Below are positions 27,500 through 64,000 of a stretch of DNA of 64,000 bases, piece by piece. The stretch is taken from the sequence record PQ015379.1. The stretch is one strand, 5' to 3'. Under the pieces are notes generated by a model. That model saw nothing but the letters and a program-made list of their open reading frames with translations. It was not told the DNA's origin and searched no databases. A program made the position numbers and the translations under genes. How positions within the stretch are numbered: position 1 is the stretch's first letter; every line of letters begins with the position of its first letter.

Positions 27500-27563
27500 G
27501 TTCCACCTCATTCGAAAAATTAGGGTAGGCAAAACCAATTGCTCTACCCTGAATTTACAGTTT

Positions 27564-48048: not shown

Positions 48049-48311
48049 AGAAAATTCTGATTATTTTGTCGCTACTATCGGTCGCCGGTTGCGGAGACGA
48101 TAAAGTCTACGTCGATGCCACGACCGGCCAGCGTGTAGCGGCCCCGGAAGAGCGCAATCTGGAATCTTTCAACTATACGAAATCCACGAATTACGCGATG
48201 GATCGTATGTGTATCGATGGTGTTGTGTACCTGCGTTATGATCGCGGGATCACCGTCGCTTTCAAATCTGACGGCACGGTCGCTCGCTGCAAAGGGGCGC
48301 AGCTACTATGA
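48045..48311 (+). CDS. lipoprotein
   Basis: MKKILIILSLLSVAG-C signal II/lipobox. Confidence 0.8.
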   Translation: MKKILIILSLLSVAGCGDDKVYVDATTGQRVAAPEERNLESFNYTKSTNYAMDRMCIDGVVYLRYDRGITVAFKSDGTVARCKGAQLL

Positions 48312-48556
48312 CCAACGCCACGTGGTGGATCTTGGGCCTGTTTTTCGCGGGCGTCCTCGCACTGATCGTGGTTGCGGTTTATCGTGGCCGGGCCAAGCCT
48401 GAACCAACACCGACGAAACGCAAAAATCCTAAAAGCCGGATGGAACGCAAACTGTCGCGGGAAGTTTACGCGAAGGCCATCAGACACGGCGCTACCGAGG
48501 CCGAAGCGCGCAAATGCGTTGCCCTCTACCTAAAACGCCGGGCTGCTAAACTGTAA
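48308..48556 (+). CDS. small N-anchored membrane protein carrying a KAIRHGATEAEA module
   Basis: TM WWILGLFFAGVLALIVVAVY then basic domain shared with 60727..62025. Confidence 0.8.
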   Translation: MTNATWWILGLFFAGVLALIVVAVYRGRAKPEPTPTKRKNPKSRMERKLSREVYAKAIRHGATEAEARKCVALYLKRRAAKL

Positions 48557-58779: not shown

Positions 58780-59243
58780 TCGACGCTGAAGACTTCCAAA
58801 TTCCCGTGCCCAGCACCCAAAAGGCACTGGACCGCATCGTGTTGCAACAATCGGTAAAGCACCTGCAACAGCAAATCTCCGAACGTTTGATGGAAGCTGT
58901 GCAGGACAATCTTTTCGAAAACACGCCGCAGCAGTTGATCGCCAGTTGCAACGCGATGCTGGCCGACGCAAGCGACAAAAACTTGCTGGGCGCAGAACTG
59001 TCGGCTATCGACTCGAAAATCTGCACCAAGTACGAAATCCACGATGCGAAAAACCGCTGCCTCGTTCGCCTCATGGATAAAAACGACAGCGATATCAAAT
59101 TCATCTGGTTGCGTGGTCGCCGCAAGGCCCATAAGGTTGGTCGCAGCCACGTAGGTTCGATTTATCTGGCGTTTTCGGCGCGCCCGGTCGAGGCTACGCG
59201 GCGTGTGGTGTTCCAAGTTGCAGTGGAGTCGAAGCCACAATGA
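58776..59243 (+). CDS. hypothetical protein
   Basis: Start MIDAED at 58776 (ATGA overlap). Confidence 0.65.
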   Translation: MIDAEDFQIPVPSTQKALDRIVLQQSVKHLQQQISERLMEAVQDNLFENTPQQLIASCNAMLADASDKNLLGAELSAIDSKICTKYEIHDAKNRCLVRLMDKNDSDIKFIWLRGRRKAHKVGRSHVGSIYLAFSARPVEATRRVVFQVAVESKPQ

Positions 59244-59545
59244 ACAACACTGTAAACCATATGAAGCGTGAGCTTTATGTGCTGATCATCAATGAGTTGA
59301 ACCGGCAGGCGCGCCCGTCTTGCAAGGCTTCGGGCCGCGAAGAAAAAGAGCGGTGCATGCGCGCCTATGTGCAGCGGCAATACCTGAAAATCGGTGGCCC
59401 GTTGAACATGGAACTTCTCCCATATTTCCATCCAGATTTTCCAGATAACGAGCACGAATCGCTGGTGAATGCTGACCTCGAAGTATTGGTCACTATCGCC
59501 AGCAAACTCGGTTACTCGCTGGATATGAACTGGACCCGTCGCTAG
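59240..59545 (+). CDS. hypothetical protein
   Basis: 101 aa coupled ORF. Confidence 0.65.
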   Translation: MNNTVNHMKRELYVLIINELNRQARPSCKASGREEKERCMRAYVQRQYLKIGGPLNMELLPYFHPDFPDNEHESLVNADLEVLVTIASKLGYSLDMNWTRR

Positions 59546-59554
59546 GAATAAATC

Positions 59555-60601
59555 GTGGCAAAACAATTTGAAGCCGTTTTCACCTCGGACTGGCATTTGA
59601 CCGGCCTGAACAAACATTTCCAAGATGCAGATGATCGCATTCTGGCCGAAGGTCGTAAGATTTTTCAGTACGCGCTGAATAACGGCATCAAATACGTGAT
59701 CATTCCGGGTGACATTTCCGATAACCCGGATCTGCCATTCGACACGTACACCAGCCTGTTCAACCTGTTTTACGAATACGACAAACTGCTGACCATCATC
59801 TACGTGGCAGGCAACCACGATTTCGAGAACATCGAGAAAATGTCGATGAACTTCATGCGTCGTTTGTCGAAAACCAAAGCCTTCAAAAACCTGCGCATCG
59901 TACTCAAGCCCGAGCGTATCGAAATCGAAGGCGTGCCGGTCAATCTGTTGCCGTTCCCGGCCCTCAAAACCCTGTCGAAAAAGACCGGCGCCCTTAACGT
60001 GGCTCACGTTGAATATACCGGGGCCGTCGGTGACAACGGGCGTACCCTGAAGACCAAGCATGAACTGGAATCGCACAAAAACGATTTCACGATCAGCGGG
60101 CACATCCACCAATACCAGTACATGGAAAAGAAACGCGCGATTTATTGCGGCAATCCTTTCCAGAAAAACTTCGGCGAAACCAGTGTCAAAGGTTTCGTGC
60201 ACGCCCGTGTGATCCTCAATGGGGATCGCGTGGATGTGGAACATAAATTCGTCGAGAATAAACCGGCGTTCAGTCTGCAAAACGTACACATCAAAGACCT
60301 GAACGATTACAAAAAGCTGAAGCACGATTCGAATATCCGCTATAAGCTGCACATCGATCCAGAAGTGCCGCTGCCTGCCGATATTATGCTGCAATATCCG
60401 AATATTACCGGGGGAATTGTTTGGACCGGTGCCAAGGGCAAGGATTTGACCGATATTGACACGATTAAAATCGAACGGGCGGATATTGACCCTGAATTCG
60501 GTTTGGAATCGTTTTTGGGGGCCGAAGGATTAAACGCAAAGCAGATTGAATTGGCAATGAAGGAAGTGAAAAAGGCGAAAAATAGCCTCGGTTTTTCCTG
60601 A
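59555..60601 (+). CDS. sbcD: SbcD/Mre11/gp47-like nuclease
   Basis: SDWH, PGDISD, AGNHD, AH, SGHIH metallophosphoesterase motifs, YCGNP. Confidence 0.92.
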   Translation: MAKQFEAVFTSDWHLTGLNKHFQDADDRILAEGRKIFQYALNNGIKYVIIPGDISDNPDLPFDTYTSLFNLFYEYDKLLTIIYVAGNHDFENIEKMSMNFMRRLSKTKAFKNLRIVLKPERIEIEGVPVNLLPFPALKTLSKKTGALNVAHVEYTGAVGDNGRTLKTKHELESHKNDFTISGHIHQYQYMEKKRAIYCGNPFQKNFGETSVKGFVHARVILNGDRVDVEHKFVENKPAFSLQNVHIKDLNDYKKLKHDSNIRYKLHIDPEVPLPADIMLQYPNITGGIVWTGAKGKDLTDIDTIKIERADIDPEFGLESFLGAEGLNAKQIELAMKEVKKAKNSLGFS

Positions 60602-60726
60602 GTAGTCCGGGGGCGACCCCGGAATTAATTAATTCCCGACCATACTAATTTATTTATAGTTGGTCGGCATCGCGGCGCTGCGATTAAAGGCCTACTGCAT
60701 AAACCCTTAATCGAGGAATTCCTAAG

Positions 60727-62025
60727 ATGGTCATGAAAGCCGTCCAAAAGGACAAAAGCGCTGCTGCTGTCAAAGAGCGCAAGGTAGCGAAAGCTCGCCG
60801 CCGCAAATCGAAACACAAACTCAACCGTGAGGCACGCGCCAAGTACAAGGCGATGACCGTGCAAGAAAAACGCGACCTGCACGCACAGGCCGTTTTCACC
60901 AAGGCCATGCGCCATGGTGCGACCGAAGCCGAAGCGAAAAAGATCAAGGCCGCGTGGCTGAAACGCCGCAAACTGCGTGAACAGGGCCAACACGCCGCTG
61001 GTAAGCGCCGCGATGCCCACTCGGCTCAACGTCAAATTCGCTCGCAACTGAGCCGCAAAGCTGATGCCCTGAGCACCCAGCACAAAAAAGCTCTGCAAGC
61101 GATCAAAACCAAAGGCAAAACTCCTGCCGCCCGCGCTCAACTGCGTGCCAAGGAAAAAGCCCGTTACGCCGACGCTCGCAAAGCGCTGGCCGCCGAGCGC
61201 ATGAAAGCCACCGGTGCCCACAAGGCCGCTTTGAAGAAGATCAAATCGAAAGGGAAATTCTCCCTGAAGAGCATGATCAGCAACTACAAAGACAAGCCGA
61301 TCAGCACCCAAGGCAAGCGTCTGGTTAACGTGGACAAAATCGGCAAGAAAGCTCAAGCCGATGGCATCGCGAAAATCGCTGGCAAGCACTTCAACGCCAC
61401 CAAGATCAAAACTGGCGGCGCCAAGAAGAAAACCCCAGCCGCTGCTGCCCCAGCCGCCGCTGAAGCTCCGGTGAAAAAAGGCCGTGGTCGTCCAAAAATG
61501 ACCGAAGAGCAAAAGAAAGCAGCCGCTGAAAAGCGTGCCGCCGCCAAAGCTCCTGCCACCCCGGCCAAAAAAGCTGAAAGCAAAAAGGCTGACAAGCCTG
61601 CCAAAGCTCCGGCCAAAAAGCCTTCCGCGAAGAAAACCGAGGCTGCCCCGGCTGCCCCGGAAAAACGCGGTCGCGGTCGTCCAAAAATGACCGAAGAGCA
61701 AAAAGCAGCCGCCAAACTGGCGCGTGACGCCAAGAAAGCTTCTGCTGCCAAACCGGCCAAAGCTTCCAAAGCTCCAAAAGCTCCCAAAGCTTCCACCAAG
61801 ACCAAGCCTTCGGCCAAGTCGAACGTAGAAGCCAAGGAAAAGCCGGAAAACAAAAAGCCAGCGGCCAAGACCAAACCGTCGAACGCCCCGGCCAAAAAGC
61901 AGCCCGCCACCAAACCAGCGGCTAAACCCGCTGCGAAGAAACCGGCCAAAAAGCCTGCCGCTGAAGCGAAAGCTCCGGGCAAGCAAAAAACCGGTGGCGC
62001 CGCTCCTAAAGTCCGCCTCGCCTAA
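60727..62025 (+). CDS. histone H1-like Lys/Ala-rich protein with two AT-hooks
   Basis: 432 aa; KKGRGRPK and KRGRGRPK; KPAAK repeats; GAGG RBS; own terminator. Confidence 0.8.
   Translation: MVMKAVQKDKSAAAVKERKVAKARRRKSKHKLNREARAKYKAMTVQEKRDLHAQAVFTKAMRHGATEAEAKKIKAAWLKRRKLREQGQHAAGKRRDAHSAQRQIRSQLSRKADALSTQHKKALQAIKTKGKTPAARAQLRAKEKARYADARKALAAERMKATGAHKAALKKIKSKGKFSLKSMISNYKDKPISTQGKRLVNVDKIGKKAQADGIAKIAGKHFNATKIKTGGAKKKTPAAAAPAAAEAPVKKGRGRPKMTEEQKKAAAEKRAAAKAPATPAKKAESKKADKPAKAPAKKPSAKKTEAAPAAPEKRGRGRPKMTEEQKAAAKLARDAKKASAAKPAKASKAPKAPKASTKTKPSAKSNVEAKEKPENKKPAAKTKPSNAPAKKQPATKPAAKPAAKKPAKKPAAEAKAPGKQKTGGAAPKVRLA
61486..61703 (+). repeat. 29-bp direct repeat (61486-61514, 61675-61703) encoding the AT-hook module GRPKMTEEQK
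   Basis: GGTCGTCCAAAAATGACCGAAGAGCAAAA occurs twice. Confidence 0.9.
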
Positions 62026-62059
62026 TACGTGAAGCGGCGCTCTAGGGCGTAGCAAAACG

Positions 62060-62094
62060 AAACCCGTCTCTCTTTATTGGGAGGCGGGTTTTTT
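62060..62094 (+). terminator. intrinsic terminator
   Basis: AAACCCGTCTC...GAGGCGGGTTTTTT. Confidence 0.75.
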
Positions 62095-62146
62095 GCGTTA
62101 TGGACCATAATTTATTTGTATATCCTCCTATTCGGGTGTACAGGCA

Positions 62147-63148
62147 TTGCAAATACAATCCAAATACATCGATGACAACCCGAACATCATCGACCTTAAA
62201 AACGCCCGAAACGCAAACGAAGTCGTAACGGTATTAACCCGAATCAATACGGCTACCGGCGTTTTGGTTTCCAAATTCAACCAAAAGAAGCTGCCATTCC
62301 TGAAGGTTTCCGATGGTGTGGAAGCCCTCACGTTCTGCGTTGATTCGTTGGTCGAACTACGCTGTGCACGTTCTGTTGCGCAGGAATTCAGCGATTCCAA
62401 ACGCGACCGCTGTTTCCAGATGATCAGCGCCCTGCAATCCAACATCCGTTCGTTCCAGAAAACGCTGTTGGATTTGATCGATGGTGTTTGCAGTTCCCGC
62501 ATGGACAAACACCTCGATTACCTTTCGGATATCGTCTACAAAATCCTTTCGCGAATCAGCCACACCACGCAGCTGCACCTGCGCCTGCCTGAATATCAGA
62601 TGATTTGCTTCCGCACTGATTCCGGCATTCAGGATAAAAACGGCTACGTTAGCGGCCCGATCACGGTGAAGCTCACGCTGCTGGGCGGTGTATATCGCAT
62701 TTCGATCCCTGATTCGCCGTACGTGCTTTCCGGTGAAACCATCGTTGAATCGGCAAAGGATGTGCAAACGTACATCACGGGCAACCTTTCCGATTTCGAA
62801 TACGTCGGCAAACCGGTGCCCAAGGACGACAAACTGCTGGCGTCCAAACTGGTGAAAAACATTGAGGTAACGGACGATACTTTGAACGTCGTTTTGAAAC
62901 CCTTCGTGAAGCCAGAAGATATCAACAAGTTTTTGATGCGGGTTCTGCCGTATCTCAAGCGTGCGGTTAGCCTGCCCGACACTGATGTGATCCACCGCGT
63001 TTCGCAGTACGGGAACAATTTCATGATTTCTTTCATCGTGGGTAAACGGAAAATCTACGATGTGCAATCACTGAATAAACTGACGAAGCTGCTGAACGTC
63101 GGCAAGTCGGAAAAAGACAAACTCAACACAATCATGGAACAATCCTAA
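62147..63148 (+). CDS. hypothetical protein
   Basis: 333 aa ORF; start uncertain (TTG). Confidence 0.75.
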   Translation: MQIQSKYIDDNPNIIDLKNARNANEVVTVLTRINTATGVLVSKFNQKKLPFLKVSDGVEALTFCVDSLVELRCARSVAQEFSDSKRDRCFQMISALQSNIRSFQKTLLDLIDGVCSSRMDKHLDYLSDIVYKILSRISHTTQLHLRLPEYQMICFRTDSGIQDKNGYVSGPITVKLTLLGGVYRISIPDSPYVLSGETIVESAKDVQTYITGNLSDFEYVGKPVPKDDKLLASKLVKNIEVTDDTLNVVLKPFVKPEDINKFLMRVLPYLKRAVSLPDTDVIHRVSQYGNNFMISFIVGKRKIYDVQSLNKLTKLLNVGKSEKDKLNTIMEQS

Positions 63149-64000
63149 ATGGCACAAGACCTCAGTTTCATCAAAAAGATGACGCCGGAACAGGCTGCGA
63201 AATACTACAAAAACCGGAAGAGCACCTATCGCCGGTTGCTGTCGAAATTCACCAGCCTGCTGCGTTTCTTCTTTGGCAAATCGTTCCGTTCGAACGTTGC
63301 CACCGCTTCCGAAGTGAAGGTGCGCGAAGTCCGTGATGGTTCTGGTGGTGGCGGTAGTTCCGCTGGCTATGGCCTGTCGGTTCAAAAGCTGAAAATTCCG
63401 GGCAAACGCCAACTGCAAAAGAACCTCGATGCCCTCGAAATGCGCGGCGCCATTGACGAACTCGATGCGATCATCGACCAGTGCAGCGCTACCGAAAACG
63501 CTGGCATGAAAGCGCTGGTTAAAGACATGATCGCCAACCGCAACGCGCTGGCCGAAGTCTACACCGAAGCCCTGCATGCCATGTCGGAAATGTCCGAGAA
63601 TTTCATTCCGGATGAAGTGGGCGATCTGTTCAAACGCATTCAGAAATACTTCGACAGCATGGAGAAAAACCATGTCGAAGCGCGTGGCGAAACCGACGAA
63701 AACGAAGACGAACTGGCCTACTACATCAACGTAGGCACCAAAGACGGCGGGATGGATTTCGTACTGAACTGCGATATCACCCACTGGCGCAACGTCACCG
63801 AAGGTTTCCACAAGGCGCTGTGCGTCGTGGTCACTGTTCGCGTTGAGCCGAACGAATCTGCATTCTCGTTCAAATCCTACGTGAACATTCTGGATCGCGT
63901 GGCCCTGCCGTACCTGTACAACCTCGGTTCGGAAATCACTGGCGAAAACACTTCCGCCGTCGCGAAAAACTTCGTGAAAAACATCGACCGCGAAATCGCT
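63149..64000 (+). CDS. hypothetical protein, runs off window end
   Basis: ATG at 63149 directly after previous stop; MAQDLSFIKKMTPEQAAKYY...NVATASEV; no stop seen to 64000. Confidence 0.75.
   Translation, partial: MAQDLSFIKKMTPEQAAKYYKNRKSTYRRLLSKFTSLLRFFFGKSFRSNVATASEVKVREVRDGSGGGGSSAGYGLSVQKLKIPGKRQLQKNLDALEMRGAIDELDAIIDQCSATENAGMKALVKDMIANRNALAEVYTEALHAMSEMSENFIPDEVGDLFKRIQKYFDSMEKNHVEARGETDENEDELAYYINVGTKDGGMDFVLNCDITHWRNVTEGFHKALCVVVTVRVEPNESAFSFKSYVNILDRVALPYLYNLGSEITGENTSAVAKNFVKNIDREIA

Follow-up and report, generated by a model that had tools for sequence, protein, structure and literature searches.

Several described proteins resemble parts of the protein analysed here. The T4 internal proteins IPI-III and adenovirus protein VII are basic, are carried in the head together with the genome and are cleaved by the maturation protease; the T4 proteins are ejected with the DNA and protect it. 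AT-hooks, such as those of HMGA, recognise A/T tracts through the minor groove. AlgP has a tail with dozens of KPAA units, and PhaF has a similar two-part plan to the one described below, that is, a helical N-terminal part followed by a tail resembling that of histone H1. To our knowledge, little is known about how phage genomes of 250-300 kb are neutralised and packed beyond the use of divalent cations and polyamines, or about how jumbo phages without a phage nucleus protect their genome in the first minutes of infection. Here we analyse a gene of the Pseudomonas jumbo phage HRDY3 (PQ015379.1, a circular record of 313,683 bp from pond water), which codes for XDJ15192.1, a basic protein of 432 amino acids (aa) labelled "hypothetical protein" in the record. 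The gene and its relatives are a candidate for such packing or protection: a virion-linked polycation in which a eukaryote-like minor-groove reader and a tail similar to that of linker histones are attached to a domain specific to the family. The gene lies in a stretch of 64,000 nucleotides (nt) of the record, which we call the window; window positions 59000-63500 match the HRDY3 record with 100% identity, and position 59000 corresponds to position 183000 of that record.

The general idea of phage proteins that compact the genome is not new. Large aquatic 'moraphages' were reported in 2025 to have H1-like proteins of the Hc1 type, with the same idea of compaction (PMC12619734), and virion proteins of the jumbo coliphage phAPEC6 are annotated as 'DNA condensation protein' (PMC7247149). 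However, the moraphage proteins match the Pfam family PF07432 and the HRDY3 protein does not, neither report describes AT-hooks or the N-terminal domain found here, and the likeness to the phAPEC6 proteins is one of annotation alone. What is new is this combination of domains and its link to the virion. Members of the family are labelled only "hypothetical" or "Unknown" in the database records and the single proteome study that we consulted, and we found no description of the family in the literature searched.

The link to the virion comes from phage PaBG. A profile search of the PaBG genome gave one match, PaBG_00191 (gp191, AGS82067.1; 332 aa, hidden Markov model (HMM) E 4e-6), which lies immediately downstream of SbcD, ahead of the same series of genes up to the head-tail connector. 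Comparing the profile of the N-terminal domain with gp191 in hhalign gave a probability of 94.8% (E 5e-8, 158 columns). Furthermore, a Foldseek search of a viral structure library returned as real matches only gp110 of phage Lu11 (E 7e-16) and the PaBG protein (E 3e-7). Because of these HMM, hhalign and Foldseek matches, and because the same leader element precedes both genes, we take gp191 to be a true homologue of XDJ15192.1. In particles of PaBG purified in caesium chloride (CsCl), 14 proteins were visible with Coomassie, gp191 among them; Table 1 of that study (Evseev et al. 2020) lists band 8, at 35,272.92 Da, as gp191 with the entry "Unknown", and gp191 turned up in more than one band, a pattern that the authors attribute to proteolytic processing (PMC7412058). 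The average mass that we computed for gp191, 35,272.47 Da, matches that of band 8. The homologue of the HRDY3 protein is an abundant and processed component of the virion.

Since its PaBG counterpart is an abundant virion protein, XDJ15192.1 most likely coats or condenses phage DNA. A role in condensing DNA is the best supported one, given the extreme polycationic character, the AT-hook cores that recur in the family, the tail resembling the C-terminal domain of H1 and the homologue that is abundant in virions. The fuller explanation that we prefer, and which we hold with about even confidence, is that of a DNA-binding polycation which is placed in the head and probably accompanies the genome into the cell. 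The protein would be loaded into the prohead, targeted there by the conserved N-terminal domain, the C-terminal motif or both; a location in the head would imply loading at this stage, as DNA-bound proteins do not pass the portal during packaging. The tail would then neutralise the phosphate charge in bulk, and the AT-hooks would enter the minor groove of A/T tracts. Tracts of six A or T in a row (W6) occur 7.6 times per kb in the window (GC content 0.532), and since base composition predicts them to be several-fold commoner in the phage than in the assumed host DNA, the hooks would favour phage DNA. In this way the protein would contribute to compacting the 314-kb genome. As the T4 internal proteins do, it would probably leave the head with the DNA and shield it early in infection. 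Presence in virions and proteolysis are what gp191 has in common with the T4 internal proteins and protein VII, and its processing would fit a substrate of the prohead protease. Unlike in those systems, the internal location and the ejection of the HRDY3 protein are what we infer, and it has no relation to them in sequence or fold.

Next, we compared the protein with the known families that it resembles. The sequence-only reading, an earlier annotation of this DNA made from its letters, had called it a hybrid of histone H1 and HMGA. This holds as an analogy, on account of the hook cores and the tail similar to the C-terminal domain of H1, but not beyond it, as there is no winged helix, no Hc1 domain and no acidic tail of the HMGA kind. 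With HMGA the protein shares the R-G-R-P core flanked by Lys or Arg, and EKRGRGRPK of the second hook is almost the same as the first hook of HMGA1. On the other hand, HMGA has about 100 aa, three hooks, an acidic C-terminal tail and no folded domain, whereas the HRDY3 protein has 432 aa, two hooks, a basic C-terminus and a helical N-terminal domain; a motif as short as the hook cannot establish common ancestry. For the linker histones H1/H5, we found no winged-helix domain and no Pfam match at E ≤ 10, the N-terminal domain being an all-helical hairpin bundle; the Lys/Ala/Pro-rich disordered C-terminal tail is present, as a likeness in composition only. In none of the 16 closest family members was Hc1 (PF07432) among the matches at E ≤ 10. 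A Lys/Ala/Pro-rich, disordered and polycationic tail with KPAA-type repeats is common to AlgP, PhaF, Hc1 and the HRDY3 protein, although the last has only about four KPAA-like units (aa 396-413), far from the number in AlgP. There was no match to a phasin domain in Pfam or NCBIfam, and the structural comparison with the phasin PhaP (5ip0) in VIA (Z 10.7, root-mean-square deviation 5.2) is within the noise for helical hairpins. The CarD/CdnL/TRCF domain, as in CarD of Myxococcus, gave no Pfam match either. By these comparisons the HRDY3 protein lies outside HMGA, the linker histones, Hc1 and CarD and appears to lie outside AlgP/PhaF as well, and its only family is the group of Lu11 gp110 and PaBG gp191.

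XDJ15192.1 is dominated by Ala and Lys (A 24.1%, K 22.7%, R 6.9%, P 6.7%; no Cys), as had been noticed from the sequence alone, and it has a pI of 11.06 and a net charge of +97. In an AlphaFold2 (AF2) model built with a 16-sequence alignment, aa 10-185 are all-helical with a predicted confidence (pLDDT) of about 90-98, and the remainder is disordered except for short helices after the AT-hooks. The helical part consists of the helices 12-27, 29-41, 45-62 and 67-85, followed by an antiparallel hairpin of 39+39 residues (90-128/133-171); a separate model of aa 1-92 (pLDDT 88.7) agrees with the full-length one. The basic helical N-terminal half claimed earlier is thus also found in the model, and below we refer to aa 1-222 as the N-domain. 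Identities to 15 metagenomic homologues in this domain range from 41% to 56%, and the motifs AMRHGATEAEA, ISN..P.S..GKRL and KHF are invariant in the alignment. We were not able to find significant matches to the N-domain in Pfam, PHROGs or NCBIfam, with a sequence profile search of the PDB, or with Foldseek against the PDB at E ≤ 0.001. A wide VIA search returned generic helical hairpins only, with Z scores (at most 10.7 for the whole model and 6.9 for aa 1-92) that are under the level which the tool itself deems meaningful for helical proteins, and the ESM Atlas gave no usable feature match, with TM < 0.5 in every structure row. The N-domain is a family-specific helical domain without a relative in the databases searched.

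A two-helix hairpin module of the N-domain is found again in an 82-aa membrane protein encoded elsewhere in the window (Table 1). A complex prediction for aa 1-190 of the N-domain with the hairpin part of this protein gave a score of 0.00, which weighs neither way. We also considered the invariant ATEAEA as a cleavage site of the prohead protease. This idea was dropped, since the motif is also present in the membrane protein and absent from PaBG gp191, and since the protease has no Pfam family.

While the N-domain is conserved, the tail varies. The R-G-R-P core with basic flanks that defines the AT-hook (Pfam PF02178) is found twice by direct reading, and MTEEQK follows the GRGRPK of both hooks; hmmscan did not report PF02178 for XDJ15192.1 itself. 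The two hooks, the exact 29-bp duplication at the hooks and the KPAAK repeats are all present, as the sequence-only reading had described; the hooks start at aa 252 and 315, and the repeats lie at aa 396-413. The 29-bp copies sit inside modules of 72 nt that are 76% identical, and the duplication is not attributable to chance. In variant X1, one of the near-identical variants of the locus, an identical synonymous A>G change is present at offset 8 of both 29-bp copies (61494 and 61683), which suggests concerted evolution or gene conversion between the hook modules. Near-identical strains also have tails of different length, always in frame (61431-61657 and 61759): in one case 18 nt are lost from an array of 9-nt KAP repeats, and in another 225 nt around the first hook are replaced by 51 nt. 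At the very end of the protein, 16 sequences show no variation at G424, A425 or K428 although the tail before these residues is hypervariable, and distant members of the family have similar C-terminal ends. The C-terminal motif is probably a docking peptide for some partner.

To see how widespread the family is, we searched with the N-terminal part. A word search gave 15 metagenomic proteins of 365-479 aa, some of them on contigs of 250-311 kb, and an exhaustive profile search of 1.84 billion representatives gave 14 clusters at E ≤ 0.001, so the family is small and phage-borne. In a collection of phages, tblastn found Lu11 alone, even at E 10; a profile was needed for PaBG. XDJ15192.1 has the traits of the family in sequence (the basic helical N-domain, the hairpin with AMRHGATEAEA, and ISN..P.S..GKRL) and in locus (the slot between SbcD and the connector, the CTAATTT motif, the stem-loop with GGCGCT, and the terminator). 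The order SbcD, this gene, three uncharacterised genes, head-tail connector is strictly kept in Lu11, PaBG and the metagenomic contigs. Like the HRDY3 protein, Lu11 gp110 (AFH14642.1) has the family N-domain (54% identical over aa 1-207), and the Lu11 and PaBG loci share with HRDY3 the position after SbcD, the promoter-like motif, the leader stem-loop and the terminator. The tails differ: that of Lu11 gp110 has about eight PGRPKK hooks against the two GRGRPK of HRDY3, and that of PaBG gp191 has no AT-hooks, only repeats of the AKKAATKAAKP type.

The tails of all family members found are basic, and the type and number of their repeats differ from lineage to lineage. Among the 16 closest members, the number of GRP hook cores per protein is 0-7, with tail units such as KKRGRPAGSKNKPK, PGRPKKTPAAA or GRGRPKMTEEQK, and the Pfam AT_hook model matches five of the 16 (best E 2.2e-6). 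Because two of the 16 have no GRP cores, AT-hooks are a recurrent option in the family and not an obligatory part of it. In distant members the basic repeats are of other kinds, and some of these proteins are instead extended at the N-terminus by an AKK-rich stretch; the distant member P0018 has the same module of hook plus helix. Constant throughout the family are the N-domain and a polycationic disordered region. A second recurrent tail module, QPE(W/Y)KG(T/G)RKSKAV..WEK.TGKK, was seen in P0020, P0022 and P0023 and may be another unit that binds nucleic acids.

The gene stands apart from its neighbours. Its ATG lies 125 nt after the stop codon of sbcD, the neighbour on which the sequence-only reading had already remarked and which codes for an SbcD-like nuclease (phrog_100, E 9e-35; also the record annotation), and gaps of about 120 nt are found on either side of the gene in all relatives. 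Judging from the elements in these gaps, it appears to be a monocistronic unit with its own promoter-like motif, leader stem-loop and strong terminator. Neither these elements nor the N-domain family and the virion link were part of the earlier reading. The terminator is kept at the same place in five related loci, and the Shine-Dalgarno sequence is conserved in Lu11. A scan for the sigma-70 consensus found no promoter. The motif CTAATTT(A/T) is invariant in ten loci, including that of the Dickeya phage AD1. In the 313.7-kb HRDY3 genome there are five exact CTAATTTW sites, all in intergenic DNA and in the right orientation, often immediately behind a terminator: one before the gene of XDJ15192.1, two ahead of the operon whose last gene codes for the major head protein, one ahead of a gene in the vicinity of those for tail fibres and lysis, and the remaining one before the operon from window position 27516 (minus strand), which includes a 5'-3' exonuclease. 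Of the eight sites in PaBG, five are intergenic and precede gp191, gp192, the tail sheath gene gp213, gp189 and gp280. The motif is likely a phage-specific class of promoter that serves genes with strong expression, the main structural genes among them. The sequence TAATTTATTT occurs only twice in the window, before the gene of XDJ15192.1 and before the next gene.

The leader element between the motif and the start codon is supported by covariation. Its inner 5-bp stem is kept in all nine family loci, with three of the five pairs covarying, and the outer stem, similar to AGUUGG/CCAACU, is present in most loci; in PaBG the outer sequence is different, yet still paired. The genomes of HRDY3, Lu11 and PaBG each contain a single match to a covariance model of the element, in every case upstream of this gene, and an Rfam search gave nothing above noise. 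The stem-loop could be a 5' stabiliser of the mRNA or an operator for autoregulation, and a dedicated RNA element of this kind would be a handle on the high-level expression of a polycation that is toxic to the cell.

Table 1. Coordinates of the features discussed in the text; positions refer to the window unless the HRDY3 record is named.
Feature	Position	Strand	Basis
Coding sequence of the 432-aa basic protein XDJ15192.1	60727..62025, stop codon included	+	Open reading frame and record annotation
Basic helical N-domain, aa 1-222, net charge +48	60727..61392	+	Alignment, AF2
Two-helix hairpin module, aa 45-85	60859..60981	+	Shared motif KA(M/I)RHGATEAEA(K/R)K...YLKRR
Disordered Ala/Lys/Pro tail, aa 223-432 (A 29%, K 26%, P 13%; pLDDT below 50)	61393..62022	+	Composition, AF2
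AT-hook 1, GRGRPK, aa 252-257, then short predicted helix aa 260-270	61480..61497	+	Reading, AF2
AT-hook 2, GRGRPK, aa 315-320, then short predicted helix aa 323-338	61669..61686	+	Reading, AF2
Exact 29-bp duplicate, copy 1	61486..61514	+	Repeat search
Exact 29-bp duplicate, copy 2	61675..61703	+	Repeat search
KPAAK-type repeats, stretch KPAAKPAAKKPAKKPAAE, aa 396-413	61912..61965	+	Translation
C-terminal motif K-(T/S)-G-G-A-x-P-K...(F/L)-(S/A)	61987..62022	+	Alignment
Hairpin just 3' of the sbcD stop, 7-bp stem, no U-run; possible terminator	60606..60623	+	-15.2 kcal/mol, z -1.9 (weak)
Promoter-like motif CTAATTTA	60645..60652	+	Invariant upstream in 10 related loci
Two-tier leader stem-loop, invariant loop GGCGCT	60655..60704	+	Covariation, covariance model
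Shine-Dalgarno sequence GAGGA, 9 nt 5' of the ATG	60713..60717	+	Direct reading; conserved in Lu11
Intrinsic terminator, 14-bp stem and U6	62059..62095	+	-23.2 kcal/mol, z -6.2
Motif variant CATAATTTA before the next gene	62106..62114	+	Motif reading
Further exact motif sites	Window 27516-27523; HRDY3 record 226173, 226291, 113297	- (window site)	Motif scan
82-aa membrane protein: N-terminal hydrophobic helix, then copy of the hairpin module (KAIRHGATEAEARK..YLKRR)	48308-48556	+	Motif
Overlapping open reading frame, 476 aa	60625..62055	-	Listing of open reading frames

We asked whether the preferred explanation stands up to others, beginning with the gene itself. One reading is that it is a chance open reading frame in low-complexity DNA, or that the frame of 476 aa which overlaps on the minus strand is the true one. 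To determine the coding strand we used contigs with near-identical metagenomic variants from four public runs. The 28 natural single nucleotide polymorphisms (SNPs) are 18 synonymous and 10 non-synonymous in the plus frame, versus 4 synonymous and 24 non-synonymous, including one stop, in the minus frame; the three length differences among the variants (18 nt; 2+1 nt; 225 nt to 51 nt) are all multiples of three. Because the SNPs are mostly synonymous there and the indels are in frame, the plus frame is the coding one; the gene is real and under purifying selection. The N-domain, the synteny, the Shine-Dalgarno sequence, the leader and the terminator are all conserved as well, and we regard the non-gene and minus-strand readings as refuted.

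There are several points that weigh against the preferred explanation of a DNA-binding protein packaged in the head. The evidence for the virion is a single gel study, using matrix-assisted laser desorption/ionisation (MALDI), of a homologue; that homologue is only 34% identical over the N-domain and has no AT-hooks, which are also lacking as GRP cores in the two close members mentioned above, and a sticky polycation could co-purify with particles. The comparison of A/T tracts uses an assumed host GC content of 0.62-0.66, at which 1.5-3.0 W6 tracts per kb are expected from composition alone. Finally, the promoter-like motif fails to fix a late timing of expression because nuclease genes also follow it, namely the exonuclease operon in HRDY3 and a gene for a MutH/Vsr-like nuclease in PaBG. 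Potentially, then, the protein could act inside the cell as phage 'chromatin' or in the takeover of the host, by coating replicating DNA, compacting the host nucleoid or displacing silencers of the MvaT/MvaU type from the AT-richer phage DNA. In that case it would be no purpose-built part of the head, and would have come into PaBG particles by carry-over. We consider this possible but doubtful. The gene is at the border of the block for replication and recombination, beside sbcCD, and the motif precedes an operon of the replication type; A/T tracts would be favoured by AT-hooks and by MvaT alike, and the copy of the hairpin module in the membrane protein would also suit an intracellular role. 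However, gp191 is visible with Coomassie after CsCl banding and is processed like head proteins, the motif is also common to capsid and tail-sheath genes, and passive carry-over is unlikely, as the portal normally strips DNA-bound proteins.

The composition of the protein would suit any polyanion, so that its partner might be RNA, including its own leader, or polyphosphate, or poly-glutamate proteins of the phage, with a role as nucleator of condensates or regulator of translation. The conserved leader stem-loop, which is specific to this gene, could be the operator for its own product, and PhaF of P. aeruginosa is a precedent; it is reported to be an RNA-binding activator of translation with an intrinsically disordered RNA-binding region (PMC12818456). 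We think that this is unlikely, since AT-hook cores are minor-groove readers of DNA and recur in the family, and a homologue associated with virions suggests that the partner is packaged DNA. A structural or assembly protein without a role in nucleic-acid binding (a scaffold, a decoration or a 'hair' protein, with the basic tail as a spacer) seems to us highly improbable. The gene does precede the head-tail connector cluster, the homologue is in virions, and long helical hairpins like that of the N-domain are common in assembly proteins. Nevertheless, a charge of +97 with canonical AT-hooks argues for bulk electrostatic binding, the tails stay basic while the type and length of their repeats vary freely, and scaffolds are as a rule acidic and absent from mature heads.

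A gene for a giant SNF2-type ATPase lies a few genes downstream in all these phages (PaBG 148541-154450; in HRDY3, record 193606-199668, about 5.6 kb past the end of the window). In PaBG this ATPase, gp202, is virion band 1 at 221 kDa (PMC7412058), so a DNA translocase would be packaged beside the H1-like protein. One can go further and imagine that, in tailed jumbo phages of the Lu11/PaBG group, the genome arrives as pre-assembled 'chromatin'. An AT-hook/H1-like protein packaged in the head would already cover the DNA at entry and shield it from nucleases and from silencing of the MvaT type; the SNF2-family ATPase would then uncoat or translocate the DNA, while the H1-like protein would limit its own synthesis via the leader stem-loop. 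We regard this extended scheme as speculative and improbable as a whole.

Two further observations concern the neighbourhood of the gene in other phages. In the Alexandravirus branch, Dickeya phage AD1 has a 229-aa basic protein rich in Lys and Ala, AD1_184 (L017:4248-4937), in the slot after SbcD, with ACTAATTTT upstream. We tried it as a homologue, but hhalign gave a probability of 0.06%, no sequence homology to the family was detectable and the leader element is absent, so it was counted as a positional analogue only. The gene that follows XDJ15192.1 starts with TTG at 62147 in HRDY3, and its orthologue in Lu11 is annotated as starting much later (L002:7186-7405). The DNA 5' of the annotated Lu11 start is conserved, and the start of the orthologue has probably been placed too far downstream.

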